A DNA stretch of 64,000 nt, from sequence record OR670491.1; one strand, 5' to 3'. Positions 1-28,789 of the stretch are shown one piece after another (position 1 is the first letter of the stretch; each line of letters starts with the position of its first letter). Under the pieces are notes generated by a model. That model was given only the letters and a program-made list of their open reading frames with translations, did not search any database and was not told the origin of the DNA. The translations under genes and the position numbers were made by a program.

Positions 1-291
1 GTGTATGGTGGATGGGAAGCAAACAATTACTACACCGGATACAAAGAAAGCATTGATTTGAAAATTGAAAAACAAGTCAATGCTGCTTTGGATCAGATGC
101 AACAAGAATCGGCTAAAAGTTATATTGAAACTAAGCAAATCATGCAAGATAATGCTAAGGTCATTGAAACTAAAATACCTTACATCGTTGAACGTGAAGT
201 TTACTACAATGTATGTTTAGACCAAGATGGTGTGAATGTTCTTAAAGAACTAAAAGAAAATTCACGTAAAGCGAGGAATCAGTACAAATGA
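1..291 (+). CDS. i-spanin (Rz-like), 5'-truncated by window
   Basis: Helical periplasmic-type sequence ending VYYNVCLDQDGV, typical of Rz C-termini; ATGA overlap with a lipoprotein gene. Confidence 0.75.
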   Translation: MYGGWEANNYYTGYKESIDLKIEKQVNAALDQMQQESAKSYIETKQIMQDNAKVIETKIPYIVEREVYYNVCLDQDGVNVLKELKENSRKARNQYK

Positions 292-593
292 AATATATTC
301 TGATTTTATCATGTGCACTATTATTTGCTGGATGTGCTCAAAAAGTACAATTACCTGCTGACCGAGTAGTAAAGCAAGAGATTCTACTTGAGCGTTGTTC
401 GTTTGATACCCCACTCCCTGAACAAATTGTTGTTGACAAACACGGCAATTCAGGATACTCTGGTAAAGAAGTTTTGGATGTACTACGTAAATGGGATTCA
501 ATCTACAATGATTGTGCTCTAAAGCACGATGCATTAATTGACTTGATTCGTAAACTACAAGGTGAAAACATCACGGTCATTATTAAAGAGTAA
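288..593 (+). CDS. o-spanin lipoprotein (Rz1-like)
   Basis: Signal peptide with lipobox LFAG-C, further Cys residues, coupled to upstream i-spanin. Confidence 0.8.
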   Translation: MKYILILSCALLFAGCAQKVQLPADRVVKQEILLERCSFDTPLPEQIVVDKHGNSGYSGKEVLDVLRKWDSIYNDCALKHDALIDLIRKLQGENITVIIKE

Positions 594-603
594 GGACATT
601 TGA

Positions 604-1200
604 ATGAAGAAATATCAGGTTTACTATAAAACTAATTTAGATTTAATTCATAAACTATCTACTACTGGAGAAGGTACTAAGCGTTATACTTTCAATAAGG
701 TAACATTCAGATACTTCCCACAAAAAGTACTGACATTTGTTAAAAATTGCAAATGCATTGCTTGTGGTATCGAAGGAACCGAAGTTCGTATTGAACGTTC
801 TCACAGTAACGATCCAATTTATGGTAAACCTCATCTCAATGTCTATGCAGTGTGTGGATTGTATGAAGTACTCATGACCGTAGATCATAACCATCTGGCT
901 TCTAAAGGCGGGTCTGATTTAGAAAGTAATTTTAATACCATGTGCGTTCACTGTAATCAAATGCGTTCAAATAAAACTGAAACAGTTCAAGAATTTCTTG
1001 AAAATGTTAAAGGTCGAAATCTATTAGATGAACACATGAAACTTTTTTTCGATAAACAGGAAAAGAAAAAGAACCCTTCTAATAGAAAGCCAGAAACAAT
1101 CGCTTATGAAAAATGGTGGAATGAAGAACATTTATGGCATTACCGTGATTATCTTCGTAAATTGAAAAAAGAAGAAAAAGCTTTACTTAAACAAAAGTAG
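604..1200 (+). CDS. HNH endonuclease (Zn-binding)
   Basis: CxxC (CIAC) plus DHNHLASKGG...NFNTMCVHCN HNH motif. Confidence 0.8.
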   Translation: MKKYQVYYKTNLDLIHKLSTTGEGTKRYTFNKVTFRYFPQKVLTFVKNCKCIACGIEGTEVRIERSHSNDPIYGKPHLNVYAVCGLYEVLMTVDHNHLASKGGSDLESNFNTMCVHCNQMRSNKTETVQEFLENVKGRNLLDEHMKLFFDKQEKKKNPSNRKPETIAYEKWWNEEHLWHYRDYLRKLKKEEKALLKQK

Positions 1201-1210
1201 TATGTATAAT

Positions 1211-1238
1211 GGGACTTGAGAAATCAAGTCCTTTTTTT
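1211..1238 (+). terminator. Rho-independent terminator
   Basis: GGACTTGA-gaaa-TCAAGTCC then T7. Confidence 0.8.
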
Positions 1239-1251
1239 ATAGGTAAAATAT

Positions 1252-1608
1252 ATGAAAACTAAAATCTTTCTACCACAAACCATGATGGAACTGTGTGAAC
1301 ATGATGCAGGAGATGTAGTCACTATTAGTGGTTCCTGGATTGAGAGTACTGAAGACTTTATGCCAGATGAGGTTTATTCTGTTGTTTTAAATGAACAGTA
1401 CAATACAAGCCGTTGGAATGCACAGTACAATCTAGTTTTTCTTGACAAGAACAATGAAAAGTACTATCATTGTACGTATGAACGAGGTCTGACAGAACGT
1501 AACTACACAACTCCTTTCTGTGATGAAATGGATGGTGTAAAGTGCTATGAAGTTTCTGTTCGTCAGGTTCCAGTTGTTACTTACAAAACCGAGTGGGATT
1601 ATCTGTAA
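1252..1608 (+). CDS. hypothetical protein
   Basis: 118-aa ORF with AGGT SD. Confidence 0.7.
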   Translation: MKTKIFLPQTMMELCEHDAGDVVTISGSWIESTEDFMPDEVYSVVLNEQYNTSRWNAQYNLVFLDKNNEKYYHCTYERGLTERNYTTPFCDEMDGVKCYEVSVRQVPVVTYKTEWDYL

Positions 1609-2006
1609 TGCTTAAAGATTTAGATTTTTCAAATTTAGAGATCATCAGTGCAGTGAAGAACATTACTGATATGGATGATGAAAAAGGTGTAATGGTAACT
1701 ATCACTTTCGTAAAGGAAGAGGATAGCTATAAGCATCTTACTGGAATTGAAGAACTAATCCACAAGACCAATCTCGAAAACGATGGTAAGCTTATCAAGC
1801 TTCAGGCATCCTATTCCCAAAAAACGTCATTTTTTGTAGACCTAAATAATGTAGTCAAGGTGGTATACAATCATCCTGACAACAAATACAGAAGCACAAC
1901 ACGAAACGAAGAAGCAGCCATCGACACTAATATCAAAGATGATGTCGAATTTGTTAATACAGTTTTTGAGCGTTGTGCACCTGAATTGAAAAAAGTATAC
2001 TTATAG
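1608..2006 (+). CDS. hypothetical protein
   Basis: TAATG stop/start coupling at 1606-1610. Confidence 0.7.
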   Translation: MLKDLDFSNLEIISAVKNITDMDDEKGVMVTITFVKEEDSYKHLTGIEELIHKTNLENDGKLIKLQASYSQKTSFFVDLNNVVKVVYNHPDNKYRSTTRNEEAAIDTNIKDDVEFVNTVFERCAPELKKVYL

Positions 2007-2007
2007 T

Positions 2008-2037
2008 TTGGGAAATACTCCAGAAAAGTGCTATAAT
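2008..2037 (+). promoter_or_regulatory. extended -10 sigma70-type promoter for the non-coding unit
   Basis: TGc-TATAAT at 2029-2037; weak -35. Confidence 0.6.
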
Positions 2038-2042
2038 GTATA

Positions 2043-2565
2043 GTGAAAATGACAATGGGCGGTGTAAGCCGGATAACGAGAACCTAATTCTCTTGAAAAT
2101 GTAAAGGATAGATGAGCTTTACCATTGTAGCGATGAGCAAAAGAAACCCGTAAGAGTACTAGCAGCCATTCCAACAAGGCATAAGAACTACGAATCACGG
2201 CGAAGCGGCTCAATAAAGAACTCCGACAGCATAACAGAGAGTTCCTCGATAGACTTATAAGGATCGCACCTTACCAGATTTGCTAAGGGAGTTTAACTCA
2301 ATAAATGCGGTCGCAATTTTTCACAAGAAAGTTGCGTCCAAATTTTGAGTAAACAAGTACTACTTTGGTCGAATAGAGTTAGTACTTTGTGCTGGGGATG
2401 AAAAGACCAGTGACCGTTGCATATGACTGCGATAGAGAGAAACAGAGCAACCCGCTTTCGTTCTCTTAAATTAGACGAGAAAGATCCGTCTAAAATTTGA
2501 GAAATTCGCAATTCGACAATTCCGATGCCATCAGCGTCAAGAAGAGACTTAATTGTCTCTTTTTT
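2043..2565 (+). ncRNA. candidate large structured non-coding RNA (~520 nt), family unassigned
   Basis: No plus-strand ORF; promoter before, terminator after; about 10 helices found by eye; 41% GC by hand count (2041-2520) versus about 30% in the next gene start. Confidence 0.7.
2542..2565 (+). terminator. Rho-independent terminator closing the candidate ncRNA
   Basis: AAGAGAC-ttaatt-GTCTCTT then T-run. Confidence 0.8.
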
Positions 2566-2570
2566 ATTAC

Positions 2571-2709
2571 TTTCATTCCCCTGCGGGGGGATGAAATGTC
2601 CTCAACAAATCCCGTCAAGCTTTTAAAGTACAATATAAAGGAATGAATGAGTTTACGAAGTAAACGATATGAATTCTTGAGTTACGAAGGAACGAAGTGA
2701 ATGAGTAAC
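2571..2709. other. hairpin cluster with C-GAA-G mini-loops
   Basis: 11-bp hairpin 2571-2596; GTTTAC-gaa-GTAAAC 2651-2665; three ACGAAG hexamers. Confidence 0.5.
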
Positions 2710-3129
2710 ACAGCGAATATTTCAAATAAATCTGAATTCACACAAGAGTTGTTTAATGTGTTTTTCAAATATCAAATATTAGAAGAGAGTCAATGCTTTC
2801 AGCTTTATTACAAACAAGTCGGTAGTACATACAACAACTACAAAGAACCTAATTTTTATAAAGAAATTTTGGATTTTGCAGTTAATATAAGAAATAACAG
2901 ACCAATAGCAATACTGTTTTTTGACAGATCTATTCCAGTAGAAGTACCTAATCACATTTACTTCATTGAACCAGAAGATTTATCTTCAAAGAATCAATTA
3001 GATTACTTAAGGAATTGTATACTGATAGTATGTGATGAAGTGAAGTATAACCGTCAGTTGAGATGGGATATACGTCATCAAAGAGTACTCAGGGACATGA
3101 ATCCCGAATTAGCCTTTATAATTAACTAA
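2701..3129 (+). CDS. hypothetical protein
   Basis: 142-aa ORF. Confidence 0.65.
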   Translation: MSNTANISNKSEFTQELFNVFFKYQILEESQCFQLYYKQVGSTYNNYKEPNFYKEILDFAVNIRNNRPIAILFFDRSIPVEVPNHIYFIEPEDLSSKNQLDYLRNCILIVCDEVKYNRQLRWDIRHQRVLRDMNPELAFIIN

Positions 3130-3160
3130 ATATCATAGAAGAACTCTAAGGAGAGATTTT

Positions 3161-3601
3161 ATGGAAAATATTGAAAATTTAAGACATGTAATGGACTTCA
3201 TTGGAAGTACTGAAGAAGATAGTGCATACGATGAAGTACTACTTACTTTTATTGAAAATAGTTTATTTCTATCTAGTTTAGCTCATAGTTGGCATTTACA
3301 ATGTCATTTCTATACTAAGCACTTACAGTTAGATGAACTATATAAAGACTTACCAGAGTACGTTGATGCATTCGTAGAAGGTATTATGAATAATCGCGGT
3401 GCTTTGCAGGTTGGTACTGGACATAGTTACAAATTCACCCCAGTGGAAGAATGTGTTCCTATTCTTGAAGAATATGTTGAGCAATGCAAAGCAATTCATG
3501 CTATGCTTACTGAAGCTGAAGACTATGGCAGTACTAACACACTAGAAGATATTATGAGTTTTGTTGAAGGAATGCTTTACAAACTCAAAGTTTTACAATA
3601 A
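3161..3601 (+). CDS. Dps/ferritin-like four-helix protein
   Basis: HSWHLQ...KHLQLDELY...DAFVE resembles the Dps ferroxidase helix pattern. Confidence 0.6.
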   Translation: MENIENLRHVMDFIGSTEEDSAYDEVLLTFIENSLFLSSLAHSWHLQCHFYTKHLQLDELYKDLPEYVDAFVEGIMNNRGALQVGTGHSYKFTPVEECVPILEEYVEQCKAIHAMLTEAEDYGSTNTLEDIMSFVEGMLYKLKVLQ

Positions 3602-3608
3602 AATATAC

Positions 3609-3639
3609 GGAGAGTCCATAACGGATTCTCCTTTCTTTT
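3609..3639 (+). terminator. Rho-independent terminator
   Basis: GGAGAGTCC-ataac-GGATTCTCC then T-rich. Confidence 0.7.
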
Positions 3640-3650
3640 GGAGAAAATTA

Positions 3651-4004
3651 ATGAGTGAATACCGAGTAACAACTGGCCTAATGGCACGTTTAGTAGAAGC
3701 TGTACCTGAAGATGATTATGAATCTGTTTCTGACCGTCTATTCGAAGCTGACTCTGGCCTTCATATTACATATGATGGTTCATTAATTTTCAGTACTGAT
3801 GTTGATGTTCCTGCATATGAATTTGATATTTCAATTGGTACTAAACTAAGCAAAACTGCATTTATTGAAAAGTGCTTACGTGAAGGTTTTTGTGTTGATG
3901 AAAATTCAATTGAACCATATGTATCAGTATGGTGTGATAATGCTGATAGTCCAATGTCAACTACAACAATTGGTGATTTTCTAAATGCAAATCAAAAAGA
4001 TTAA
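3651..4004 (+). CDS. hypothetical acidic protein
   Basis: ATG 3651 with GGAG SD; ORF-track start 3561 overlaps the upstream gene and terminator. Confidence 0.7.
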   Translation: MSEYRVTTGLMARLVEAVPEDDYESVSDRLFEADSGLHITYDGSLIFSTDVDVPAYEFDISIGTKLSKTAFIEKCLREGFCVDENSIEPYVSVWCDNADSPMSTTTIGDFLNANQKD

Positions 4005-4377
4005 ATTCCATCAGCATTCTTCCTATCATGATTGTGATGACTGTGGGATGATGATAAGTGATATTTACACTGTTTCATGTAAAGGGTTTACATTCACTCA
4101 TGGTGAACCTGCTTATTGCTACGGCAATGAAGAAGGGGATATCGAAATAGTACTAAAAGAGTTGTTTCAGTACTTGCAAAGCGAAGGTCATGATGTTACA
4201 ATGCCCACATATTATGAAGATGATTATGAATCACATGTAGAAGAAAATACATATTATAATCAATTCGTACATGGTAATGGTTTTATTACATACCTTCATG
4301 AGAATGGTATTGAGGTAAAAACCAAGTTCACCAGTGATGACTACGATAGTGATGATTCTATGGAGATTGAAGAATGA
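3985..4377 (+). CDS. hypothetical protein, possible Zn ligand (HDCDDC)
   Basis: 130-aa ORF, CxxC near N-terminus. Confidence 0.65.
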   Translation: MQIKKIKFHQHSSYHDCDDCGMMISDIYTVSCKGFTFTHGEPAYCYGNEEGDIEIVLKELFQYLQSEGHDVTMPTYYEDDYESHVEENTYYNQFVHGNGFITYLHENGIEVKTKFTSDDYDSDDSMEIEE

Positions 4378-4943
4378 AGGCCAAAGATTTAGCGGCATTA
4401 CTGATGCAGAATCCTGAAATGGAAGTGTATCATGAAAATTGGCACAGTGATGATATGTGCGAGGTATATTATTCCCCAGAAACAATTGATGGGATTGAAA
4501 TTACTCCCAGTGGTGTATTCATCAAGACTGCAAGTGTTGATTTCAATGACAGTCGTGAAATTAAACTCCCGTGTGATAAACCAATCATTGGAACAATTGA
4601 CCTAGTATTCCACCAGGAACGTCAGATTGATACTGAAAATGAAGATGGTGAACAGGTTGCTGATGTTGCCAATGTCATTTTCCCTTTTTACTATTCTGAT
4701 TCACAACCAATGCACGGTAATGATTTCTTCCGTGAACTTTTGGAAGATGGTGAGGTATATGGTCGTGATGGAAATGTATTTGCACTTGATGAGAACTACG
4801 AACCAGACCACAACACTTGGCAGTTCTATACACCAGAAGATGTTATGGAAGTAAAAGTACTAACATCATTTGACGAACAGTGGAATGTACAGTATACTTC
4901 AATGAAGTTTGAAGAAGCTAAAAAATACTTTGAAACCAAATAA
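4374..4943 (+). CDS. hypothetical protein
   Basis: ATGA coupling, 189 aa. Confidence 0.7.
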   Translation: MKAKDLAALLMQNPEMEVYHENWHSDDMCEVYYSPETIDGIEITPSGVFIKTASVDFNDSREIKLPCDKPIIGTIDLVFHQERQIDTENEDGEQVADVANVIFPFYYSDSQPMHGNDFFRELLEDGEVYGRDGNVFALDENYEPDHNTWQFYTPEDVMEVKVLTSFDEQWNVQYTSMKFEEAKKYFETK

Positions 4944-4968
4944 GATTATCAAATAAGGATCTAATAAT

Positions 4969-5253
4969 ATGAAAATTGTTGCAAGTGCGTGGATGGGATT
5001 TGAGGATAAAACTACTGGTTACGAATCTAGCCTAATCGTTGAAAGTACTGAAGAATTAAAACGATTTAAAGCTGAAACCGATGATGATGTATTTGATATT
5101 GTATACACTTATCATCTCATCCCTAACGATACCGACTATGACAAATATTATTATGATCCAGACAGCCTCATGGAGCTAGTGTCTTGTACTGAAAATGAAG
5201 TAAATGAGACAACGGCACTACTAATGTTGAGTACTGTCCCAGCAAAGGGGTAG
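4969..5253 (+). CDS. hypothetical protein
   Basis: 94 aa, AAGGA SD. Confidence 0.7.
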   Translation: MKIVASAWMGFEDKTTGYESSLIVESTEELKRFKAETDDDVFDIVYTYHLIPNDTDYDKYYYDPDSLMELVSCTENEVNETTALLMLSTVPAKG

Positions 5254-5256
5254 TTT

Positions 5257-5742
5257 ATGTATACACTTATTTTCTTACGTGAGCCAGACGGTGACAGTAC
5301 TGATGGTGTTGTTGAATTTCATGGTGCTGACTCCATTGTTGCAGTAGAACGACTTATCAAAGCTGTTGTTCGTAGGCAGGTTCTTCTTGAACGTACTAAC
5401 AAAGGAAAATACACTTATGGTGAATGTGGCTTTGTACTGCTGAAAAATGGCGAATTAGTTGATGAATACAATAGTTCTTTTTCAAACATGTATTCTGATT
5501 TTGAATGTATTTCTCAATCTAAAGAAAAATACAGCATAAACAAAGTTGTGCAACAAATTTCCAGACTTCTATCAAGACAAACAAGTTTTATCAATGACCA
5601 GAAAACTGATGAGCGATTCGTATCAAATTCATTAAAACCTTTGTATGAACGTTTGGAAAAAGAAAATATGGAGCGTAAACGTCTAAAAGAATTGATGGAA
5701 AAGTATCCTGATATGGTGAAAGAATATGGCAAAGAGATCTAA
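5257..5742 (+). CDS. hypothetical protein
   Basis: 161-aa ORF in operon. Confidence 0.7.
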   Translation: MYTLIFLREPDGDSTDGVVEFHGADSIVAVERLIKAVVRRQVLLERTNKGKYTYGECGFVLLKNGELVDEYNSSFSNMYSDFECISQSKEKYSINKVVQQISRLLSRQTSFINDQKTDERFVSNSLKPLYERLEKENMERKRLKELMEKYPDMVKEYGKEI

Positions 5743-6046
5743 TTTATCATATGAAGCATGTGAAACATACATGACCAAAGATGGAAAGGAACATCGAGGG
5801 GTTAAGCCAGAGTACGTAGTGCTACGTGAAGTTCTGTTGAATGAAAGTTACGGCAGCAATCGCCGTAACAAGATCTTAGATTTACTAAGAAGCGGAATTG
5901 AAATTGCAGTAAATCGCAAGTACTCTGTCCAGACGAAAGATGATCCAGATATCAAGAAATTGATTAAGGACGGTAAAATTGAAATGTTCAATGTAGCTAC
6001 TGGTCCGAAATCAAAATGCACATACTTAAGGATTAAGAATGGGTAA
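5726..6046 (+). CDS. hypothetical basic protein
   Basis: 106-aa ORF in operon. Confidence 0.65.
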   Translation: MAKRSNLSYEACETYMTKDGKEHRGVKPEYVVLREVLLNESYGSNRRNKILDLLRSGIEIAVNRKYSVQTKDDPDIKKLIKDGKIEMFNVATGPKSKCTYLRIKNG

Positions 6047-6620
6047 ACTAATATATTACTATGGGAGTATGAGTTCAGGTAAAAGTACTAACTTATTACA
6101 AACAGCATACAACCATAAAAAGAATGGAATGGAAGTGGTTTATCTCACCAGTGCATTAGATGACCGATACGGGGTTGGTACGATTAAATCCAGAATTGGC
6201 ATCGAAGCCCAGGCAGAGATTATCCCAAAAGATGACAGTACTTTATTATTGGACATTAAGAAACGTCTTGAGAAGAACTTAGATATTAACAGTATCTATG
6301 TTGATGAATGCCAGTTCCTGAATAAAGAACAAGTTGATATTCTTTCTGAAATTGCAGATGAATACAATGTTGACGTTTACTGTTATGGTATTCGTACTGA
6401 TTTCGAAACAAATCTTTTTGATGGTTCACGACGTTTGTTCGAAATTGCAGATGAAATCCATCAGCTACATAATGTGTGTGAAAACCAAAAATGTGGTCAC
6501 CCAGCAACAATGAACGTCCGCATAGCAAACAGTACTGATAAAGTTTTCATTGGTGGTGATGAATCATATAAAAGTATGTGCAGAAAATGCTATAAAGAAT
6601 ACATGAGGAAAAAGAAATGA
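6039..6620 (+). CDS. tk: thymidine kinase
   Basis: GSMSSGKS P-loop, VDECQF, YGIRTDF, C-terminal Zn Cys pairs. Confidence 0.97.
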   Translation: MGKLIYYYGSMSSGKSTNLLQTAYNHKKNGMEVVYLTSALDDRYGVGTIKSRIGIEAQAEIIPKDDSTLLLDIKKRLEKNLDINSIYVDECQFLNKEQVDILSEIADEYNVDVYCYGIRTDFETNLFDGSRRLFEIADEIHQLHNVCENQKCGHPATMNVRIANSTDKVFIGGDESYKSMCRKCYKEYMRKKK

Positions 6621-6841
6621 TTGATAACTTTCTAAAATCTATTACTCAAAGAGTATTTGGTGCTTTACTGGATAGTATCAAATTAGTATTCAGTACTGTC
6701 TATATGCTTATTATTGTATGTCTATTTTCTTTAGTACTGCATTTTGTACCAACATGGCTAGTTATTACTGCTATTATTGTATTCCTGGCATTTGGTGTTT
6801 ATGGAACATACCTGGCAGAACTTGAAGATTCAGACGTGTAA
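6617..6841 (+). CDS. small membrane protein (2 TM)
   Basis: Two hydrophobic segments. Confidence 0.65.
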   Translation: MIDNFLKSITQRVFGALLDSIKLVFSTVYMLIIVCLFSLVLHFVPTWLVITAIIVFLAFGVYGTYLAELEDSDV

Positions 6842-6846
6842 CACAT

Positions 6847-6871
6847 TAGACCCTTTATGGGTCTATTTTTT
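6847..6871 (+). terminator. Rho-independent terminator
   Basis: TAGACCC-tttat-GGGTCTA then T6. Confidence 0.8.
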
Positions 6872-6882
6872 AAGGAAAATAC

Positions 6883-7362
6883 ATGGAACCTATCTTTGGT
6901 GCATTGAAGCGTTTTGTAGATATTATATCTCATACTAACGTTCTCTATAATGACAATGACAGTACTGTAAAAATGATGGAAGTACTGGGATACACAGACG
7001 TACAAAGTGTGTATTATGACGGTATCATGGTCAGAGGTATCGAAGGAGATTGTCGATTATCTTACATGGGTATGATTGACACCTTTGTTGTACAGAAAGG
7101 AAAGATTGAAATTGTCCTTGAAGTACGTTATACAGGTTCATCAAACACAATATATTACAATTGTACCCGTACTGATTGTGCATATGAAACAGACTTTGAC
7201 CAGCAAACGACTATGCAATCCAGACCAATCGATTACCCTGATGATTCTTTTGTGCAAATTCATAAGGATTTATTTGATTTATGTGCTACAATGTCAGAGA
7301 GTGAAGACGTATATTACTTCCCAATCATCACAGTAAGAGAGAATGGTAATGCGATGGCGTAA
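6883..7362 (+). CDS. hypothetical protein (paralogous family member)
   Basis: 159 aa; C-terminal PIDYPDDSFVQ similar to 10705 and 11098 ORFs. Confidence 0.65.
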   Translation: MEPIFGALKRFVDIISHTNVLYNDNDSTVKMMEVLGYTDVQSVYYDGIMVRGIEGDCRLSYMGMIDTFVVQKGKIEIVLEVRYTGSSNTIYYNCTRTDCAYETDFDQQTTMQSRPIDYPDDSFVQIHKDLFDLCATMSESEDVYYFPIITVRENGNAMA

Positions 7363-7747
7363 ACATAAAGTGAAACAGCTTGAAAAAATTGTCAAGAAGT
7401 TTTATAGCAAAAAAAGTGATCCAATGATGGTTATGCTACGTGACAGTATAGGGGTACGAAAGTATCCTGAATGCTTAACCAACTCTATTGGTCGCATGAA
7501 CAATCGATACTACGTTAATGATTATGCAAGTGCCGAAACCTCTTTTTTCGGAAATCGTGTATCTGTACCATCATACGTTCATTCAAAAGTGAAGCGAAGC
7601 CGTGTTCAAGGTGTTCTGCATGGTTATTTGCTGATTACGATGGAAGAATTAAACAAAGAGTTAGGTACTAACTACACCCAAGGCTGCATAGACAATATCA
7701 AGTTCATAAAAGATTTGGACGAAGAGTTAGATGATGATACAATGTAA
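7343..7747 (+). CDS. hypothetical protein
   Basis: 134-aa ORF. Confidence 0.65.
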   Translation: MVMRWRKHKVKQLEKIVKKFYSKKSDPMMVMLRDSIGVRKYPECLTNSIGRMNNRYYVNDYASAETSFFGNRVSVPSYVHSKVKRSRVQGVLHGYLLITMEELNKELGTNYTQGCIDNIKFIKDLDEELDDDTM

Positions 7748-7777
7748 ATTGTACAACTGGAAAAAGGAAAATGAATA

Positions 7778-7909
7778 ATGAACGGATTAAAGAAGTTTGG
7801 AACTGACGTTCTTAAGTGCATTCGATACACTTATGACGCTAATCCAGAAATGACTGCAATTGTGGGTGTTTTCATTGCACTCGTTGTTTTATCTTGTATT
7901 ATGGTGTAA
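7778..7909 (+). CDS. small membrane protein (43 aa, not in ORF track)
   Basis: AAGGAAA SD; MNGLKKFGTDVLKCIRYTYDANPEMTAIVGVFIALVVLSCIMV fills the gap. Confidence 0.65.
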   Translation: MNGLKKFGTDVLKCIRYTYDANPEMTAIVGVFIALVVLSCIMV

Positions 7910-7912
7910 AAT

Positions 7913-8116
7913 ATGATTGAAATTAATGCTGATGTATATTGTAGTGCTGCACCAAATTACTTCATTTATGCACTAAGTACTTTTGGTGATACAGAAGGTG
8001 AAACTTTTGTTTTAGTAGATAATACTACATGGTACAAAACAAGTAATAAAATTCCGAAAGATGTTTTGGAAACTTATGTTCGTATTGAAAATAAAAACAT
8101 ATATGTAAATTTATAG
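7913..8116 (+). CDS. hypothetical protein
   Basis: 67-aa ORF. Confidence 0.6.
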   Translation: MIEINADVYCSAAPNYFIYALSTFGDTEGETFVLVDNTTWYKTSNKIPKDVLETYVRIENKNIYVNL

Positions 8117-8123
8117 GTAAAAT

Positions 8124-8534
8124 ATGATTGAAATGGAAGGAACTCTGGTGTATGATCCAGATCGTGGCACTATGAAAAAGAAGAAGGACTTCTGGTTAGT
8201 ACTGCAACTTCCATTACAGTTGGTTCGATACTACCAGTACTTCATCAGAACTGACTTACATATTGATATTAAAGACCCACAATGGGGAGCACATGTCAGT
8301 ATCGTTCGTGGTGAAGTGCCACCAAATCCAGAGTACTGGAAAAAGTACGATGGTATGAAAGTTAAGATTAAGTTCGAACCTTTCATCGAAGAAGTAAAAG
8401 ACAATAAGAAACCTGGGTCATTCTTTATCATAGAGTTTGAAGATGATTTCATTGCACAAATTCGTGATGAACTTGGTTTAGCATCTAAATATTTCAAATA
8501 TCACATCACCATTGGTAGAACATACTACGATTAA
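8124..8534 (+). CDS. 2H phosphoesterase superfamily protein
   Basis: Two Hx(S/T) motifs: AHVSIV and YHITIG. Confidence 0.7.
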   Translation: MIEMEGTLVYDPDRGTMKKKKDFWLVLQLPLQLVRYYQYFIRTDLHIDIKDPQWGAHVSIVRGEVPPNPEYWKKYDGMKVKIKFEPFIEEVKDNKKPGSFFIIEFEDDFIAQIRDELGLASKYFKYHITIGRTYYD

Positions 8535-8557
8535 TGTGGTTATTTGGTAAATAGGTC

Positions 8558-8585
8558 TTGATATAACTAAAAAGTATGCTATACT
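8558..8585 (+). promoter_or_regulatory. sigma70-type promoter
   Basis: TTGATA-16 nt-TATACT with TG extension. Confidence 0.65.
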
Positions 8586-8701
8586 ACTTAAATGTTCCAA
8601 AGAACAACTGAGTACTGTAGAAAGTCCAATGAGGCTTTTGCAAATGGCCTCTTTGCCCTCTTTGTGATTGCTCATTGTTAACAACCAACAAAGGAGGCGT
8701 T

Positions 8702-9628
8702 TTGAAAAAAGCGAAAAAAGCACTGAAAACTAAAATTGCCGTAGGCGTATTAGTTTCATCAGCCCTATTCGCTGCTATTGGATTTTATGGTTTTTCTCAA
8801 AGTGATCATGTACCATCATTAGACGAAAGTCAGGTGCATAATTTAAAACCACAGTTTACTCAAATTCAAAAGCAGGAACTACCACAGGTATCAGTACCAA
8901 AAGCAGTTCCAAGCAGCGAGAAACATTATACGGTTCAACCTGGAGATAGTTATTATTCTATTGCACAGAAATTTAAACCTAAAAATGTACAGATTGAAGA
9001 TTATGTCATTTTGTTGAAGAACATCAACTTAAATGCAACTCTTCATACTTCTCAGGGTATCTTTATCCCAACAAAAGAGGATTTGAAGAACGTATTGTTA
9101 CCAGATGTGACTGTACTGTTTGATTATAAAGATCCAGAAATTGTCAATCACATCAAAGAAGCTGAAGGTTCTATTGAATTTCAGTCCAAGAACAAACGAC
9201 GTTTACTTGGTGGGAAAGTTGGAGTTCCATATCGAAATTCTAAATTTTATCCGTATCGTGATATAAAAGGTAACTTCACTATTGGGTACGGACATTATCT
9301 TGGAAAGAAAGAATCAGATGCAAGTAAGTATCGTAATGGTATTACGAAGTCACAAGCACATAAACTTTTATTGTCTGACATGGAACGAACTAATAATGAT
9401 TTAGTTTTATTATTGAAGAAAAGAAATGCAACAAACCTTACGGCTGAACAGCAACGAATTTTATTTGAGATGGCATTTACATTAGGAGTTGATAAGTTAA
9501 ATACTTTCAATAAATTATGGAAAAGCGTTGATAATCAAAATGATAACAAGTTCAAAAAAGAAATTAAGAATTCTCTATGGTATCGTCAAGTAGGAAACCG
9601 TGCAGAATTGTTAGTTAGTAATTTGTAA
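8702..9628 (+). CDS. membrane-anchored LysM plus T4-type (GH24) lysozyme
   Basis: TTG start after AGGAGG; N-terminal TM; LysM YTVQPGDSYYSIAQKF; EAEG...YRDIKGNFTIGYGH. Confidence 0.85.
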   Translation: MKKAKKALKTKIAVGVLVSSALFAAIGFYGFSQSDHVPSLDESQVHNLKPQFTQIQKQELPQVSVPKAVPSSEKHYTVQPGDSYYSIAQKFKPKNVQIEDYVILLKNINLNATLHTSQGIFIPTKEDLKNVLLPDVTVLFDYKDPEIVNHIKEAEGSIEFQSKNKRRLLGGKVGVPYRNSKFYPYRDIKGNFTIGYGHYLGKKESDASKYRNGITKSQAHKLLLSDMERTNNDLVLLLKKRNATNLTAEQQRILFEMAFTLGVDKLNTFNKLWKSVDNQNDNKFKKEIKNSLWYRQVGNRAELLVSNL

Positions 9629-9633
9629 TTTAC

Positions 9634-9666
9634 AATAAAGGATGATATGTATCATCCTTTATTTTT
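9634..9666. terminator. 14-bp inverted repeat terminator
   Basis: AATAAAGGATGATA-tg-TATCATCCTTTATT. Confidence 0.75.
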
Positions 9667-9677
9667 AAGGTAAAAAT

Positions 9678-10310
9678 ATGATATATAATGTTGGTATAAA
9701 TGATGTACCAGGTGATTCTAAATCGGATAGTGATGGTTATTATATATATGTGAAATGGAAAAGTATGATTAAACGATGCTACTCAGTTGAATATCAAAAA
9801 ATACACCATTCATATATTGGAACAACTGTATGTAATGAATGGCTTACATATTCAAATTTTAAAGATTGGTATCTAAATAATTACATAGACGGGTATGTTT
9901 TAGATAAAGACTTGATATCGGGTGATTTACAAGTATACTCACCAGTGACATGTTCATTTGTACCACAAGAATTAAATTGTTCTATTCTTGAAAGTAATAG
10001 TGCTAAAACAAAACTACCATTGGGTGTGTCATATCAACAGAAAACTAAAAATATGATAAATGAACGTTCGAAACCATATGATTCATATATAAAAATGTAT
10101 GGTAAGTTGTATCGTCTTGGTAGTTATGAATGTCCTGAACTTGCACATAAAGAATGGCAAATCGCCAAGAAAAAATATCTCGAAGAACTCATTGACAGAT
10201 ATAAAAATTCTGTTAAAATGGAAGTCATAGAAGGTATTCAGAAACGAATTGATATATTACATAATGATATAGTCAATGACGGTGTTACAATAACAATCAA
10301 TAAGATATAA
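9678..10310 (+). CDS. free-standing HNH-type homing endonuclease
   Basis: KWKSMIKRCY...VCNEWLTYSNFKDW...LDKDL...YSPVTCSFVPQELN motif set of phage HNH homing nucleases. Confidence 0.8.
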   Translation: MIYNVGINDVPGDSKSDSDGYYIYVKWKSMIKRCYSVEYQKIHHSYIGTTVCNEWLTYSNFKDWYLNNYIDGYVLDKDLISGDLQVYSPVTCSFVPQELNCSILESNSAKTKLPLGVSYQQKTKNMINERSKPYDSYIKMYGKLYRLGSYECPELAHKEWQIAKKKYLEELIDRYKNSVKMEVIEGIQKRIDILHNDIVNDGVTITINKI

Positions 10311-10322
10311 GGTAGGTAAATT

Positions 10323-10649
10323 ATGCTAAATTTCGTTATCCAAGGTAATGTAGATGTTACTCCAGCAATTCATGACGCAATCCGCGATGAAGCAACAGTA
10401 CTAAGTAAATTTAGTGATGCTTCAGTACTGAATCTTGGTGTTCATCTGAAGAAAGAGCATAAAACACAGTACACTGTAACACTAACTTCTAATGGTAAGT
10501 CTGTTACTGCAAATGCAGCAGATTTATACAAAGCGATTAGTGATTCATTTGAAAAAATGGAAGTTGTACTTGGTAAAGACAAAAGCATTAAACTGCATCG
10601 TCGTAACCACCCAACACGTCCTCTGGACTTGACAGAAGACGAAGAGTAA
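10323..10649 (+). CDS. ribosome hibernation factor (HPF/RaiA, S30AE-like)
   Basis: N-terminal QGNVDVTPAIHD and C-terminal DLYKAISDSFEKMEVVLGKDK match the HPF pattern. Confidence 0.75.
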   Translation: MLNFVIQGNVDVTPAIHDAIRDEATVLSKFSDASVLNLGVHLKKEHKTQYTVTLTSNGKSVTANAADLYKAISDSFEKMEVVLGKDKSIKLHRRNHPTRPLDLTEDEE

Positions 10650-10657
10650 TTTATAAT

Positions 10658-10691
10658 AAAGGGACAGTATATTTCTGTCCCTTTTCTTTTT
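10658..10691 (+). terminator. Rho-independent terminator
   Basis: AAAGGGACAG/CTGTCCCTTT then T-rich. Confidence 0.8.
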
Positions 10692-10704
10692 GGAGTTTTT
10701 TAAT

Positions 10705-11097
10705 ATGCATAGTGTATGGCTGGAAATAATCAAAACTCTTATATCAGTACATGACAAGGACTTACCTGATAATCTAGTCATTAACCGATGGTACTATCCA
10801 GACACATTTGACAGAAAGGTTGGATGCATCTTTTATCACGACGATTACGGTAAATTTTGTGGATTAATTGAAGATATCAAATCCAATGTATCTTTCTCTA
10901 TAGAAATGAACGTAGATCACATAAAATACTACAACAGTAAAATGGATGAAGAACATGATGATGTTATAATCCCTATGGATATTGACGAAGCTGAGTTTTT
11001 TCAGTTATCAACAATTTATAATTTATCTGACATTACTTATGATAATGTTAAAGACATTATTAAATTGTACGATAAAATGTATAATTACTTTTTGTGA
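10705..11097 (+). CDS. hypothetical protein (paralogous family)
   Basis: ATG 10705 after GGAG; C-terminal IPMDIDEAEFFQ. Confidence 0.7.
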   Translation: MHSVWLEIIKTLISVHDKDLPDNLVINRWYYPDTFDRKVGCIFYHDDYGKFCGLIEDIKSNVSFSIEMNVDHIKYYNSKMDEEHDDVIIPMDIDEAEFFQLSTIYNLSDITYDNVKDIIKLYDKMYNYFL

Positions 11098-11481
11098 TTG
11101 AGGTATAAGTTGAGAAATACATTAATTAAAGTTAATTTATCACATTTCGATCCATACCAGAAATATGAAGAAAGTAAAAGGTATAATATTAATGATGATT
11201 TCACAATATATTTCAATAGAACATACAGCACAATCATCATCACTATTTGTGATCATATAAAAATTTGTATAACAAAAGATATAATAACTTTGTACATTCA
11301 AAACAAAGAAACTGATATACCAACAGATTTGGATGAAGATGCATATGCTCAAGACGAATTCGTGAGAGATCACTTGTTGATTGAGTACGATACTTATTCA
11401 TTGATTAATTTCTACAAAGTAAATTACATTAAGTGGTTGTCTGGTGAAAGTGATGATGGTATAATAGAGTGGAGCATTTAA
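11098..11481 (+). CDS. hypothetical protein (paralogous family)
   Basis: TTG start abutting upstream stop; IPTDLDEDAYAQ. Confidence 0.6.
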   Translation: MRYKLRNTLIKVNLSHFDPYQKYEESKRYNINDDFTIYFNRTYSTIIITICDHIKICITKDIITLYIQNKETDIPTDLDEDAYAQDEFVRDHLLIEYDTYSLINFYKVNYIKWLSGESDDGIIEWSI

Positions 11482-11482
11482 T

Positions 11483-11608
11483 ATGAATACAATTATGCTA
11501 GAAGAAGATTGGGGTGTTTCTGAACAAGGAACCGACGAGTACAAAGAGCCAGAATACAAGCCTAAAGGCTTCTGGGAACGTCTCTTTGACTGGTTGATGG
11601 GGGAGTGA
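11483..11608 (+). CDS. small hypothetical protein (41 aa, not in ORF track)
   Basis: GGAG SD; ends KGFWERLFDWLMGE; TGATG coupling to next gene. Confidence 0.6.
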   Translation: MNTIMLEEDWGVSEQGTDEYKEPEYKPKGFWERLFDWLMGE

Positions 11609-11793
11609 TGGAATATACGATATGTGCTGTAATTTGTATCTTAGCTTTAATCGGCGGCGTTGGTGTGATGGTGTATTGTGATGCAGAACCCAGTACTGAA
11701 ATTGGTATCAGAACAAATGCCAAGCCAGGGTTGAAAATCAATGAGAAGTACTGCTATAATATCAGAACTAACTCCTATGACATTTGCCTATAA
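11608..11793 (+). CDS. small membrane-anchored protein
   Basis: N-terminal TM segment. Confidence 0.6.
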   Translation: MEYTICAVICILALIGGVGVMVYCDAEPSTEIGIRTNAKPGLKINEKYCYNIRTNSYDICL

Positions 11794-11802
11794 GGAAACA
11801 TT

Positions 11803-12915
11803 ATGAAAAAATATCTCGTGGGTGGATTCGTCCGCGACCGACTACTGGGCTTACGTGCTAAAGACAAAGATTATGTCATTGTCAGTGCATCTGAATCTGA
11901 TATTAAGTACTTGAAAAGTATTGGGTACAAACAAGTCGGCATTGATTTCCCTGTATTCTTGAGTCCAGAGGGAAATGAATATGCATTAGCCAGGACTGAA
12001 CGTAAAGTCGGTGTAGGCTATAATGGCTTTGAAGTTAATACTAAAGGTGTAACCTTAGAAGACGACTTATATCGCCGTGACCTCACAATCAATGCTATTG
12101 CATACGATCCAGTACTGCAAATTCACATCGACCCATACGGTGGGAAAGATGATATTAAGAATAAAGTACTGCGTCACGTTTCAGAGCACTTCAAAGAAGA
12201 CCCATTACGTGTTCTTCGTCTTGCACGCTTTGCAACACGATATAATGACTTTACAATTCACGAAAGTACTGTTACAATGTGCACTGAAATGGTTAGTACT
12301 GGTGAGTTGAATCATCTTGTACCAGACCGTGTGTATGTTGAATTTGAAAAGGCACTCACTGAAGAGAAACCTGCCAAGTTCCTTAAGACACTGGCTAATT
12401 TCGGCTATTATGAAAAAGCATTTACTAAAACACTAACCCGTAAGGTATTAGAATTGGTTGATAACATTTCAGATAATTGTACAGAAGCATATAAGCCATA
12501 TTTCATTTGGAGTGCACTACTCGAAACAGAAGAAGTAAATAAAGACTCAGTACTGAACGAATCAATTAAAATGCCCGTTAAGTACGTGAAGTTTAGCAAT
12601 TATGTAAAACGATTCCGTGATGATATCAAGACATTCCGTAAGAAAACACCTGAAGAGATGGGTGCGTTGTTACTGGAAATGAACATTCGAAATAACGGTG
12701 GGGAAGAATTCCTGTACAAAGTGCTGGAGTACTTTATTCTTCGTCGTGAAATCGACCTTGAACTTGAAGATTTGATTATTAAGGTGTATGATCGTTACAC
12801 CGATACTGTATTACCTGATATTGAAGAAATGGTTAAAGACGGTTCTCTGGACAAGAAAGATATTCGTGACTTTGTACAAGGTTTGCGTATTACTGAAATC
12901 CAGAAAATGTTCTGA
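11803..12915 (+). CDS. cca: tRNA nucleotidyltransferase (CCA-adding enzyme)
   Basis: VGGFVRD, DKD, EYALARTE, RRDLTINAIA, EDPLRVLRLARF. Confidence 0.95.
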   Translation: MKKYLVGGFVRDRLLGLRAKDKDYVIVSASESDIKYLKSIGYKQVGIDFPVFLSPEGNEYALARTERKVGVGYNGFEVNTKGVTLEDDLYRRDLTINAIAYDPVLQIHIDPYGGKDDIKNKVLRHVSEHFKEDPLRVLRLARFATRYNDFTIHESTVTMCTEMVSTGELNHLVPDRVYVEFEKALTEEKPAKFLKTLANFGYYEKAFTKTLTRKVLELVDNISDNCTEAYKPYFIWSALLETEEVNKDSVLNESIKMPVKYVKFSNYVKRFRDDIKTFRKKTPEEMGALLLEMNIRNNGGEEFLYKVLEYFILRREIDLELEDLIIKVYDRYTDTVLPDIEEMVKDGSLDKKDIRDFVQGLRITEIQKMF

Positions 12916-21206: not shown

Positions 21207-21983
21207 ATGGCAAATAACATGATTAGTAAATATGGCGTTCCTTTACCATCTGGTCGTAACCGTTCCATGTTACAACCTAAAGCAAAGTACAAATTCAGAG
21301 TGATAGTTTATAACTTCGGTACTGAAATTGATGAACGTGACCATATTGCATTAGACGTAGATAAAGTTGATCGTCCTACAGTATCATTCAATACTCATAA
21401 ACTTTTTCAATTTACTACGAACACATCATATATTGGTAGTTACGATTGGGAACCAATTACACTAACAATCCGTGATTCTGTCGGTAACGCTTCTGCAAAA
21501 GCACTATCCAGACAATTACAAAAACAAATTGACTTTCAGCGTAGAATTACATCCAGAACAGACCAAGACTATGGCTCTTATAAGTTCGGCATTGTTATTC
21601 AAATGTTGAATGGGCGAAACTCAGATGATACAATAGATAACTTGGCAAGAAATACTGCTACATCAGCAGCTACATCGTTAACAAATAATGGTGGTCTTGT
21701 CAATGCTGTTGACCAATTTATTGGGGGTTCAACATACAATAGTGCAGGTGTTATGGAATACTTTGTACTAACTGGATGTGTCATTCAAAATATATCTTAT
21801 GATTCGTTGGATTATAGTTCTAGTAATTCTGTGGAAATGACTATTTCAATTAAGCCTGATAACTGTATCCAGTTTGACAACATTGAAGAAATGTACAGTA
21901 CTCGTATTAACTCACTATTACCTGAAAACGTCAATCAAGGATTAGATATAATTGACCGTGTTTTCGGTAGTATCGGATTTTAA
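21207..21983 (+). CDS. tail tube-like protein, paralog 2
   Basis: Same QPKAKYKFRV, W.PI.LTIRDSVGNASAKAL, GC.I..I.YD.LDYSSS motifs. Confidence 0.8.
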   Translation: MANNMISKYGVPLPSGRNRSMLQPKAKYKFRVIVYNFGTEIDERDHIALDVDKVDRPTVSFNTHKLFQFTTNTSYIGSYDWEPITLTIRDSVGNASAKALSRQLQKQIDFQRRITSRTDQDYGSYKFGIVIQMLNGRNSDDTIDNLARNTATSAATSLTNNGGLVNAVDQFIGGSTYNSAGVMEYFVLTGCVIQNISYDSLDYSSSNSVEMTISIKPDNCIQFDNIEEMYSTRINSLLPENVNQGLDIIDRVFGSIGF

Positions 21984-21995
21984 GGGGAGTGAAAT

Positions 21996-24115
<2,120 letters not shown>

Positions 24116-28164: not shown

Positions 28165-28542
28165 ATGATGCCTACTCCATCGAACAGTACTGAATATCAG
28201 AATAATGTTCTCCACAAGATAAAGGAGATACATGAGTCAGACGCAGCTATAACAGACCGTATGCTTCTGATGTCAATTTTTGAAAATTTCAGAACTGGCG
28301 GTGGATTGAGATTGAGTAAGTACGGATTTAAATTGTGTGAAGAAAATAAACTTTACGAATTTACAAAAATCCCCTTGCGAAAAGATTTCAAAAGCTCTAT
28401 AATGTTTACATCGCTTGACAGGATATGTGCTGAACCTTACTATGTTGACGGTCAGTACATATACCTCGCAGACATAATGATTGTTACTGAGTTGACATTA
28501 TGCTGCGATGACTTTAAAATGTTATTCTCGAATCATCAGTGA
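28165..28542 (+). CDS. hypothetical protein
   Basis: 125-aa ORF. Confidence 0.7.
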   Translation: MMPTPSNSTEYQNNVLHKIKEIHESDAAITDRMLLMSIFENFRTGGGLRLSKYGFKLCEENKLYEFTKIPLRKDFKSSIMFTSLDRICAEPYYVDGQYIYLADIMIVTELTLCCDDFKMLFSNHQ

Positions 28543-28566
28543 TTCGAAAATAAAGAAAAAAAGTTC

Positions 28567-28594
28567 TTGACAAGTTAAAATGATGTGATATAAT
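28567..28594 (+). promoter_or_regulatory. strong sigma70-type promoter P1
   Basis: A-tract, TTGACA-16 nt-TATAAT, TG extension. Confidence 0.85.
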
Positions 28595-28658
28595 GAGCAT
28601 CACGAAGTAAGTTTTCAAAATCACATGATGTGAGATTGAAAAAAAAGAAAAAAAGTTG

Positions 28659-28686
28659 TTGACAAGGTTGAACGATGTGATATAAT
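28659..28686 (+). promoter_or_regulatory. strong sigma70-type promoter P2
   Basis: A-tract, TTGACA-16 nt-TATAAT, TG extension. Confidence 0.85.
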
Positions 28687-28789
28687 GTTCAACATCAAGA
28701 CGACGAAGTGATTGACCTTTTTAAACACACGGATGATTCATGAAGTAACAAAGGAACTGATAAGTTAAAAATACTTTTAACACAGTTCC

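Follow-up and report, generated by a model that had tools for sequence, protein, structure and literature searches.

A widespread family of large, pseudoknotted RNAs in Rak2-like jumbo phages and bacterial defense islands, with possible parallels to RNA-primed replication origins

What is encoded in a gap that annotation has left empty between two genes of a jumbo phage? The question arises at positions 2007-2700 of the stretch analyzed here, 64,000 nucleotides (nt) of Escherichia phage vB_EcoM_JNE01 (OR670491.1, 62001-126000; hereafter the window), a member of Asteriusvirus among the Rak2-like jumbo myoviruses. The gap is unannotated and flanked by two plus-strand genes, the function of both being unassigned: a DUF7325 gene upstream (1608-2006) and a gene for a protein with a PHROG match only downstream (2701-3129). 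A preliminary description of this DNA had proposed a large, ornate, independently transcribed phage RNA at this site, and our analysis supports that proposal with more than 100 homologues, compensatory covariation, and two pseudoknots. Together, these comparisons show that the gap holds a non-coding unit, predicted to encode a conserved, intricately folded RNA of ~500 nt on the plus strand.

We examined whether the region could code for protein. No open reading frame (ORF) is conserved on either strand among the homologues, in which stop-free stretches vary in strand and position, and substitutions lack 3-periodicity (variable columns were 111/150, 115/151, and 109/148 over the three codon positions). 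Coding potential was rejected on these two grounds. The preliminary description had called the region free of plus-strand ORFs; minus-strand ORFs of 60 and 72 amino acids are present in the JNE01 gap, neither of them conserved. Some GenBank records also place small hypothetical proteins over the RNA region. The GC fraction is 0.40-0.44 over the gap vs 0.27-0.31 in the next gene, in line with the difference noticed earlier, and the minimum free energy z-score against shuffles is −3.9 for the plus strand and −2.8 for the minus strand.

The region matched no known RNA family. Rfam 15, whose families include ROOL, GOLLD, OLE, HEARO, raiA, 6S, RNase P, group I/II introns, and RNAI, gave 0 matches at gathering score over the whole 64-kb window, chance-level matches only (14-17 bits) at E ≤ 10 over positions 1900-2800, and nothing over the RNA at E ≤ 1 in seven paralogous loci. 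This is the database comparison that the preliminary description had suggested, and its guess at a possibly new family holds for the JNE01 copy and the seven paralogous loci alike. ARAGORN found no tRNA or tmRNA in the window and none adjoining the RNA in 18 related loci, so that the earlier impression of no tRNA, tmRNA, RNase P, or intron signature is upheld by both searches. A group I or II intron was rejected as a candidate, as the unit is intergenic, has its own promoter 15-40 nt before helix P1 in all copies, and matches no intron model. A literature search of genome papers and reviews found no description of the RNA.

We derived the structure from an alignment of 30 sequences (A3), in which stacked pairs of covarying columns were sought without bias. 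It comprises 98 pairs in 17 helices, two pseudoknots included, with standard pairs in 94.0% of 2880 cells, compared with 36-45% when the 3′ partners were slid by 1-3 columns. Changes on both sides were seen for 66 of the 98 pairs, and the observed values were reached in 0 of 500 shuffles. A check for covariation among orthologs had been proposed in the preliminary description; across the 30 homologues, the compensatory pairs are overwhelming. G-U pairs, previously read as a sign of RNA, are indeed conserved, and on the plus strand only (one pair is GU in 29 of 30 sequences). As they would be A-C mismatches on the other strand, the RNA is assigned to the plus strand.

The RNA body (2044-2541, plus strand, as are all features below) opens with a 5′ three-way junction formed by P1 (2052-2059/2121-2128) with P1a and P1b. 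P2 (2134-2138/2208-2212) and P3 (2148-2151/2197-2200) enclose a swappable variable domain, after which come P4 (2218-2224/2238-2244), P5 (2258-2261/2270-2273), the peripheral P6 domain (2291-2354), and the hairpins P7 (2356-2386) and P8 (2389-2414). The core junction is built from P9 (2428-2432/2506-2510), P10 (2435-2439/2455-2459), and P11 (2461-2465/2499-2503). Pseudoknot PK1 joins GTCGAA in the P7 loop (2368-2373) to TTCGAC directly 3′ of P9 (2512-2517); its 6 pairs are formed in 100% of cells, 5 of the 6 have changed on both sides, and it was among the top matches of the unbiased pair search. Pseudoknot PK2 joins GTTGC (2416-2420) to GCAAC (2447-2451), the latter lying in the invariant AACAGAGCAACCCGC loop of P10; its 5 pairs are likewise 100% paired, with 2 changed on both sides (GC/AU and CG/UA). 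Both pseudoknots rank among the best-supported helices. Long invariant unpaired stretches join the helices, namely GCAAAAGAAACCCGU, CACGGCAAUGCGGC, CCUCGAUAGAC, UAAGGGAG, CGACCGUUG, and CAACCCGCUU.

The peripheral parts are modular. Some copies lack the P6 domain, and others have a similar module inserted in P11. Inside P3, the enclosed domain (window 2152-2196, A3 columns 152-190) exists in two unrelated forms, a long one, AGTACTAGCAGTC...GACTACGAATC, and a short one, GAGATGGCATAGTTTGTACCACC, which are swapped between copies that are 92% identical elsewhere and also from one paralogue class to another. This exchange implies frequent patchwise recombination among copies. By eye, the palindromic word AGTACT/GTAC is strikingly recurrent in and around the units, in P7 and in several terminator stems, and it recurs in the 300 nt upstream of an Escherichia coli island copy (stretch L138:19300-19600).

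Seven of the helices drawn by hand in the preliminary description are conserved ones among the 30 homologues, and two are not. Covariation backs ACAATGG/CCATTGT, GAACTC/GAGTTC, the outer GTTTA/TAAAC stem, AAGTACTA/TAGTACTT, GCTGG/CCAGT, and the base of the stem at 2461-2502. GAGAA/TTCTC reaches only 44% pairing within the family, and CCTTA/TAAGG shows C.A mismatches in 12 of 30 sequences with no compensation. Instead of the latter, the family pairs TAAG (2258-2261) with CTTA (2270-2273), which is 100% paired with compensation. Two long-range pairings given by RNAalifold, GAUAG/CUAUC and ACG/CGU, were dropped because their variation is uncompensated.

How widely is this RNA distributed? By blastn, the region was found in 72 phage records. 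The RNA is 86-87% identical across Asteriusvirus, where the surrounding 12-kb stretch aligns at ~78-80% over 58% of its length, and 65-74% identical in Mimasvirus CBB, GAP32, Eneladusvirus (Serratia BF and Erwinia pEa_SNUABM), and Yersinia fHe-Yen9, with copies in the Xanthomonas phages XbC2/XaC1 in the same range. Klebsiella phage RaK2 has a full-length diverged copy behind a sigma-factor gene. A first broad pattern, GACCGTT...AACCCGCTT, yielded mostly chance matches and needed a profile filter; a specific core pattern then brought in 63 further metagenomic stretches, and all 63 were true homologues by profile search. In total, more than 100 distinct members were found, over at least five phage genera plus bacterial defense islands, and no homologue was found among 72,556 plasmids. 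Judged by these searches, the RNA genes form a widespread family of elaborate structure, which we regard as new. The distant relative PA5oct has two abundant non-coding RNAs (at 8263-8498 and 21951-22401 of stretch L015), ncRNA001 and ncRNA002, which were defined by RNA-seq and account for 2-5% of the reads from the phage at most of three time points, ncRNA002 dropping to 1.2% late (PMC7318152). Searches with nhmmer and for motifs found no homology of either to the family.

The unit has its own transcription signals. The promoter TGcTATAAT proposed earlier at 2029-2037 was borne out as an extended −10 element, and a −35-like TTGGGA (2008-2013) can be added with an 18-nt spacer, so that the promoter spans 2008-2037 (10/12 in a consensus scan, with TG). 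We infer a transcription start for the JNE01 copy at ~2044. In all copies, in phages and islands, TGnTATAAT/TATACT is preceded at ~17 nt by a box of the type TGAAAC(G/A) or (T)GGGA(C/A), with GGGA(C/A) in Asteriusvirus and TGAAAC(G/A) otherwise. The TGAAACG type is a divergent RpoD-like promoter that precedes DNA-synthesis genes in CBB (PMC5259590). In the copies at locus A, a terminator-like hairpin with U6 stands between the −10 element and P1, for example GGACAGC-AAGATAA-GCTGTCC-TTTTTT, where the transcript would reach it at about +5 to +35; its stem covaries, and it was seen in stretches L004 (1406-1463), L007, L010, and L105.

At the other end, the terminator claimed in the preliminary description was recovered by a terminator scan as AGAGAC-TTAATT-GTCTCT (2543-2560) followed by a T-run to 2566, and its stem covaries where present (5 pairs with double changes). 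It is optional: in the GAP32/CBB/BF group, the copies at loci A and D lack it. The unit does not end there, as had been thought (at 2565): conservation runs beyond the terminator in all copies, in JNE01 to ~2619, with a mini-hairpin following at 2651-2665, and the RNA is predicted to be ~520-580 nt long (~520 nt to the terminator, longer with the 3′ extension). This 3′ module has a fixed order of repeat 1, the optional terminator, a C4/G6 hairpin, repeat 2, 20 nt of AT-rich sequence, and a C-GNA-G mini-hairpin. In the window, repeat motif 1 is ATCAGCGTCAAG (2530-2541), conserved in all copies. The C4/G6 hairpin, helix 17 of the pair counts, is TTCATTCCCC-TGCG-GGGGGATGAA (2572-2595); its 3′ arm GGGGGGATGAAA is nearly invariant irrespective of the 5′ arm. 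Motif 2 is the 11-nt ATCCCGTCAAG (2609-2619), preceded by a conserved CAACAA. The 20 nt 3′ of motif 2 average 22% GC, and then follow ~140 nt with a purine-rich plus strand.

The mini-hairpin of the JNE01 copy is GTTTAC-GAA-GTAAAC, with a C-GNA-G triloop, and ACGAAG-type repeats continue from it up to 2700. Among 97 distinct downstream segments, 67 have a C-GNA-G hairpin (stem ≥ 4 bp) on the plus strand and 1 has it on the minus strand; counting C-GNNA-G loops too, the number rises to 78 of 97, and the background is 0.20 per kb. The loops are GAA (47), GGA (12), GTA (7), and GCA (3), the stems covary, and the median position is 72 nt past the profile end. It is the hairpin form that is conserved, as the 9-mer ACGAAGTGA alone is not enriched in the window (22 matches vs 15.5 expected). 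C-GNA-G forms a very stable DNA mini-hairpin, the RNA form being much less stable, and it occurs at the sites used by primase in phages G4, St-1, and alpha3 and in RSF1010 ssiA (PMC13037366).

The two direct repeats, 65-100 nt apart, co-vary in parallel within each copy. Across 92 distinct members, one repeat position is T/T in 59, C/C in 33, and mixed in 0, and a second is G/G in 58, A/A in 30, and mixed in 4. Rare variants also stand in both repeats of the same copy (CTTCAA in RaK2, CGACAA in a Serratia island). Copies within a single genome differ in repeat state, which a common trans-acting reader would not explain; the idea that the variant tracks the genome, as it would with a genome-encoded reader, was rejected because the variant is copy-specific. 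No RNA partner of the repeats was found by mutual information, no third copy or reverse complement within −600/+800 nt by exact scan, and no complement within −200/+400 nt by a scan tolerating G-U pairs. The pattern suggests that the repeats must match each other in cis, and it fits one nucleic-acid strand pairing at both sites through realignment, strand transfer, or slipped pairing.

We then considered where the copies stand, counting them by profile searches of the loci fetched by pattern. Each genome has 4-5 paralogues, all on the plus strand and roughly evenly spaced. GAP32 has five (at ~35, 99, 177, 262, and 341 kb), as does CBB (32.4, 94.3, 174.4, 258.1, and 336.4 kb), and likewise BF, fHe-Yen9-04, and three metagenomic genomes; the loci are syntenic and form five orthologous clades. 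With the genome ends of CBB predicted from read depth (PMC5259590), its copies and predicted terminal repeats delimit segments of 32, 62, 80, 84, 78, and 42 kb. Five bidirectional origins would ideally divide 378 kb into 38, 76, 76, 76, 76, and 38 kb, so the CBB layout is close to the one minimizing replication time from five such origins. We calculate a probability of ~0.005 that five points placed at random on a circle leave a smallest gap of at least 0.146 of its length. JNE01 has four copies, at 8,117-8,678, 64,020-64,600 (the window copy), 148,952-149,572, and 267,028-267,482 of its genome; no second copy lies inside the 64-kb window. No protein gene is common to the neighborhoods of loci A-D or of the islands. 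At locus B, the RNA lies between opposite-strand genes, the next two genes both being on the opposite strand, and it is therefore a stand-alone gene. Placement and strand uniformity together argue for a position-dependent role.

The core pattern also matches bacterial chromosomes, in six contexts from E. coli, Serratia, Silvania, and an Enterobacteriaceae metagenome-assembled genome (MAG). In 6/6 of these, the RNA lies near one end and is transcribed inward, and it retains both a promoter box of the phage type and the hairpin region downstream. The island copies nest inside the phage tree. Two Serratia strains share the order host arsC, large serine recombinase, RNA, variable defense cargo, and small resolvase, and homology between their islands ends ~100 nt past the RNA. 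The cargo of one (L173) is a 1780-aa AEP-TOTE + reverse-transcriptase protein plus a second reverse transcriptase, and that of the other (L174) is Hachiman (HamA + helicase) and AbiGi; the pair (L173:11707-21300 vs L174:11707-20200) is a clean case of defense-cargo swapping. In Serratia fonticola, the RNA is last in the island, after a serine recombinase and two ParB-like genes, and in Silvania and the MAG, it adjoins a CI-type repressor where a prophage-like element ends. In E. coli LR-29-1, the RNA is in a 10.8-kb island between ffs and ybaA, after a tyrosine integrase split by IS3; past it come several family-less proteins, DUF4326, DUF488, a dual-OB (DuOB) protein, and a small serine recombinase. 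The corresponding stretch, L138:15961-26305, has no RefSeq annotation over the RNA. The next gene is convergent in 4 of the 6 contexts (Silvania, the MAG, S. fonticola, and Serratia L174). Judged from gene order, the RNA is backbone, not cargo, of integrative defense islands, next to the integrase and adjoining swappable defense genes. Recent work has established that defense islands without transfer genes are satellites which a jumbo phage transduces, with the mechanism left open (PMC12595487). A non-coding RNA of the type found with defense-associated reverse transcriptases (DRT) was also considered and rejected, as the obligatory adjacent reverse transcriptase is present in one island only and none lies near any phage copy.

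What could such a unit do? We tentatively favor, at something short of an even chance, that each copy is the cis-acting pre-primer RNA of an R-loop replication origin, pirated by the islands. Host RNA polymerase would start at the middle-type promoter and the nascent RNA would fold; its 3′ part, helped by the G-run and the matching repeats, would stay or re-anneal on the template, and the resulting RNA-DNA hybrid would prime leading-strand synthesis by the phage's T4-like replisome. On the displaced plus strand, the mini-hairpin would signal priming or loading for the opposite strand. An island carrying one copy would be amplified by the infecting jumbo phage and could then be transduced. Several lines lead us to this reading. 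T4 offers a parallel both in how the promoters are built and in how many sites there are, every copy having, at the level of its sequence, the box and sigma70 −10 element of a T4-type R-loop origin promoter. The G-run, the AT-rich stretch, and the mini-hairpin, a strand-specific candidate initiation signal for single-stranded DNA at a fixed place, suit a transition zone in which one strand is displaced; the AT-rich 20 nt, a candidate unwinding element, sit ~570 nt from the promoter, compared with ~50 nt in T4 origins. The matching of the repeats points to a step of pairing with a template, and an origin is what a satellite island would copy from its helper.

Other observations weigh against an origin. 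The known T4 R-loop origins need no elaborate RNA. Roughly one column in four is both invariant and unpaired; with two pseudoknots, this looks more like the core of a ribozyme or ribonucleoprotein (RNP). In many copies, that of JNE01 among them, an efficient-looking terminator separates the RNA body from the proposed transition zone, and the mini-hairpin could instead be an RNA hairpin that binds protein. As the layout is syntenic and inherited across genomes, the spacing statistic is essentially one evolutionary observation, and Asteriusvirus spacing is less even (56, 85, 118, and 97 kb). GC skew is uninformative because nearly all genes are on one strand. Finally, next to an integrase is not the usual place for an origin in prophage-like elements. 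A more complete proposal, in which the unit would be a self-contained, RNA-defined origin module of folded pre-primer RNA, matched repeats, G-run hairpin, and single-stranded DNA priming hairpin, set at regular intervals on 350-kb genomes and copied by islands as a handle for amplification and carriage, is one that we consider possible, though on balance doubtful.

The main rival of the origin reading is a structured RNA acting in trans as an RNP scaffold, a ribozyme, or a decoy or sponge, for example in defense or counter-defense, with the several copies providing dosage; this is a serious possibility, though on balance doubtful. Invariant single strands around covarying helices and two pseudoknots are the signature of a catalytic or protein-binding core, and they come in a self-contained promoter-to-terminator gene that is convergent with its neighbors at locus B, keeps its core while peripheral domains swap, and is present in defense islands. 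A trans-acting RNA leaves unexplained the even spacing and uniform strand, the conserved DNA-type mini-hairpin past the terminator, the copy-specific parallel covariation of the repeats, and the status of the RNA as backbone rather than cargo, and no locus offers a conserved protein neighbor for it. An unlikely alternative is a cis-acting antiterminator of the put type that would modify the RNA polymerase transcribing it, allow read-through of the next ~70 kb in the phages, and drive the cargo genes in the islands. All copies are oriented as are nearly all phage genes (in CBB, only 34 of 554 ORFs are on the other strand; PMC5259590), each follows a promoter, many are directly followed by a terminator that could act as a filter, the island RNAs point into the cargo, and several diverged paralogues per genome are reminiscent of putL and putR. 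Such an element should lead a co-oriented operon, and instead the next two genes are on the opposite strand at phage locus B and the next gene is convergent in the four island contexts named above. Moreover, the first CBB copy is 32 kb from the genome end rather than at it, the locus-A copies have a terminator-like hairpin before the RNA, and the DNA-type mini-hairpin and matched repeats are left without a role.

The repeats raise the further idea, in our view quite improbable, that they mark strand transfer by a polymerase or reverse transcriptase, or crossover by a recombinase, with the RNA as template or guide. Strand transfer or site-specific recombination would maintain parallel, copy-specific repeats; two reverse-transcriptase genes directly follow the RNA in one Serratia island, and islands end in a small serine recombinase, with homology breaking ~100 nt past the RNA. 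Against this, the sister island with the same RNA carries Hachiman and AbiGi and no such reverse transcriptases, no homologue of that reverse transcriptase was found in any Rak2-like phage, the repeats are only 65-100 nt apart, and the scan of −600/+800 nt gave no third repeat copy or reverse complement. We give almost no credence to there being no RNA gene at all, be it that the gap holds a diverged or unannotated protein gene or conserved DNA with apparent structure as a by-product of chance. The small hypothetical proteins in GenBank and the two minus-strand ORFs of JNE01 would speak for a protein, and they are outweighed by stop-free stretches that are inconsistent among homologues, the absence of codon periodicity, compensatory changes in two-thirds of the pairs, and G-U pairs that would not survive on the other strand.

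To our knowledge, few RNAs are both large and intricately folded, and almost all classes studied so far have proved to do something fundamental. This family bears on how 350-kb phage genomes start replication and on how islands without transfer genes ride jumbo phages. If the favored mechanism is right, the unit would be a much-elaborated variant of R-loop origins; if the RNA truly defines an origin, this would be the first family of origins to be defined by a conserved RNA with tertiary structure and would give the first molecular explanation of satellites exploiting jumbo phages. If it instead acts in trans, it would be a candidate new ribozyme or RNP core. The regular genome placement, the DNA-type hairpin, and the repeats matched within each copy provide concrete experimental handles.

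Further features of the window were noted in passing. By the annotation of close relatives, window 1-12000 includes genes for a CCA tRNA nucleotidyltransferase, a ribosome hibernation promoting factor, and a thymidine kinase, and a Dps-like starvation-inducible DNA-binding protein (DUF5856/PHROG 858) is at 3161-3601. In phage 121Q, an HNH endonuclease is inserted upstream. Two near-identical strong sigma70 promoters stand in tandem at 28555-28715, ~70 bp apart, after a gene ending at 28542; the next long plus-strand ORF begins at 28856. Each consists of an A-tract, GTT(C/G)TTGACAAG, N, and TGTGATATAAT, with ACGAAGT near its predicted start site.

How does the unit compare with known systems? 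The put RNAs of HK022 are cis-acting, located just downstream of a promoter, and present as diverged paralogues in one phage genome. The RNA described here shares the position of a structured RNA after a promoter and the diverged paralogues, whereas put is ~70 nt long and always leads an operon, and this RNA is ~7 times larger and often convergent with the next gene. ROOL, GOLLD, OLE, raiA, and HEARO resemble it in size class, a complex conserved fold, a link to phages or mobile elements, and several copies in some genomes. The likeness to ROOL and GOLLD drawn in the preliminary description stands for size class only, and no relationship is detectable. Nothing in Rfam 15 matches, the host range is another one, with this family belonging to Enterobacterales and Xanthomonas jumbo phages, and descriptions of the five RNAs mention no even spacing, single fixed strand, or conserved DNA-type module at the 3′ end. 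The origins of G4, St-1, and alpha3 and RSF1010 ssiA (GCGNAGC/CCGAAGG) likewise have a strand-specific C-GNA-G hairpin, here beside the proposed priming site (PMC13037366). The JNE01-family hairpin differs in lying in double-stranded DNA, where it would need strand displacement, and its recognition by primase is putative.

Taken by its parts, the unit recalls ColE1 RNA II, with function compared by analogy. RNA II, a pre-primer, is a ~550-nt transcript made from a sigma70 promoter of its own, and the way it folds determines whether a lasting hybrid arises, with a G-run involved; the ColE1 module is self-contained, without an element-encoded initiator, and has priming signals on the displaced strand downstream. 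Size, an own sigma70 promoter, a G-run, a self-contained module, and, as candidates in the phage unit, displaced-strand signals downstream are common to both. There is no sequence similarity, and a ColE1-type RNA II replicon by homology was rejected, as none of the 72,556 plasmids matched and Rfam gave no antisense RNA I. The present RNA differs further in being pseudoknotted with many invariant joints and in belonging to phages and chromosomal islands, not plasmids. The closest parallels in replication strategy may lie with T4, in which at least 5 origins are primed by transcripts, and oriF and oriG combine an activator-box promoter with an unwinding element and allow origin plasmids to be replicated by the infecting phage (PMC3016281). 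Like oriF and oriG, the sites described here go with a T4-like replisome, number several per genome, and have an upstream box and a sigma70-type −10 element. T4 origins are ~100 bp long, have no common sequence, and need no RNA structure, whereas the sites of the JNE01 family share a conserved 500-nt pseudoknotted RNA, matched repeats, and a mini-hairpin across distant genera.

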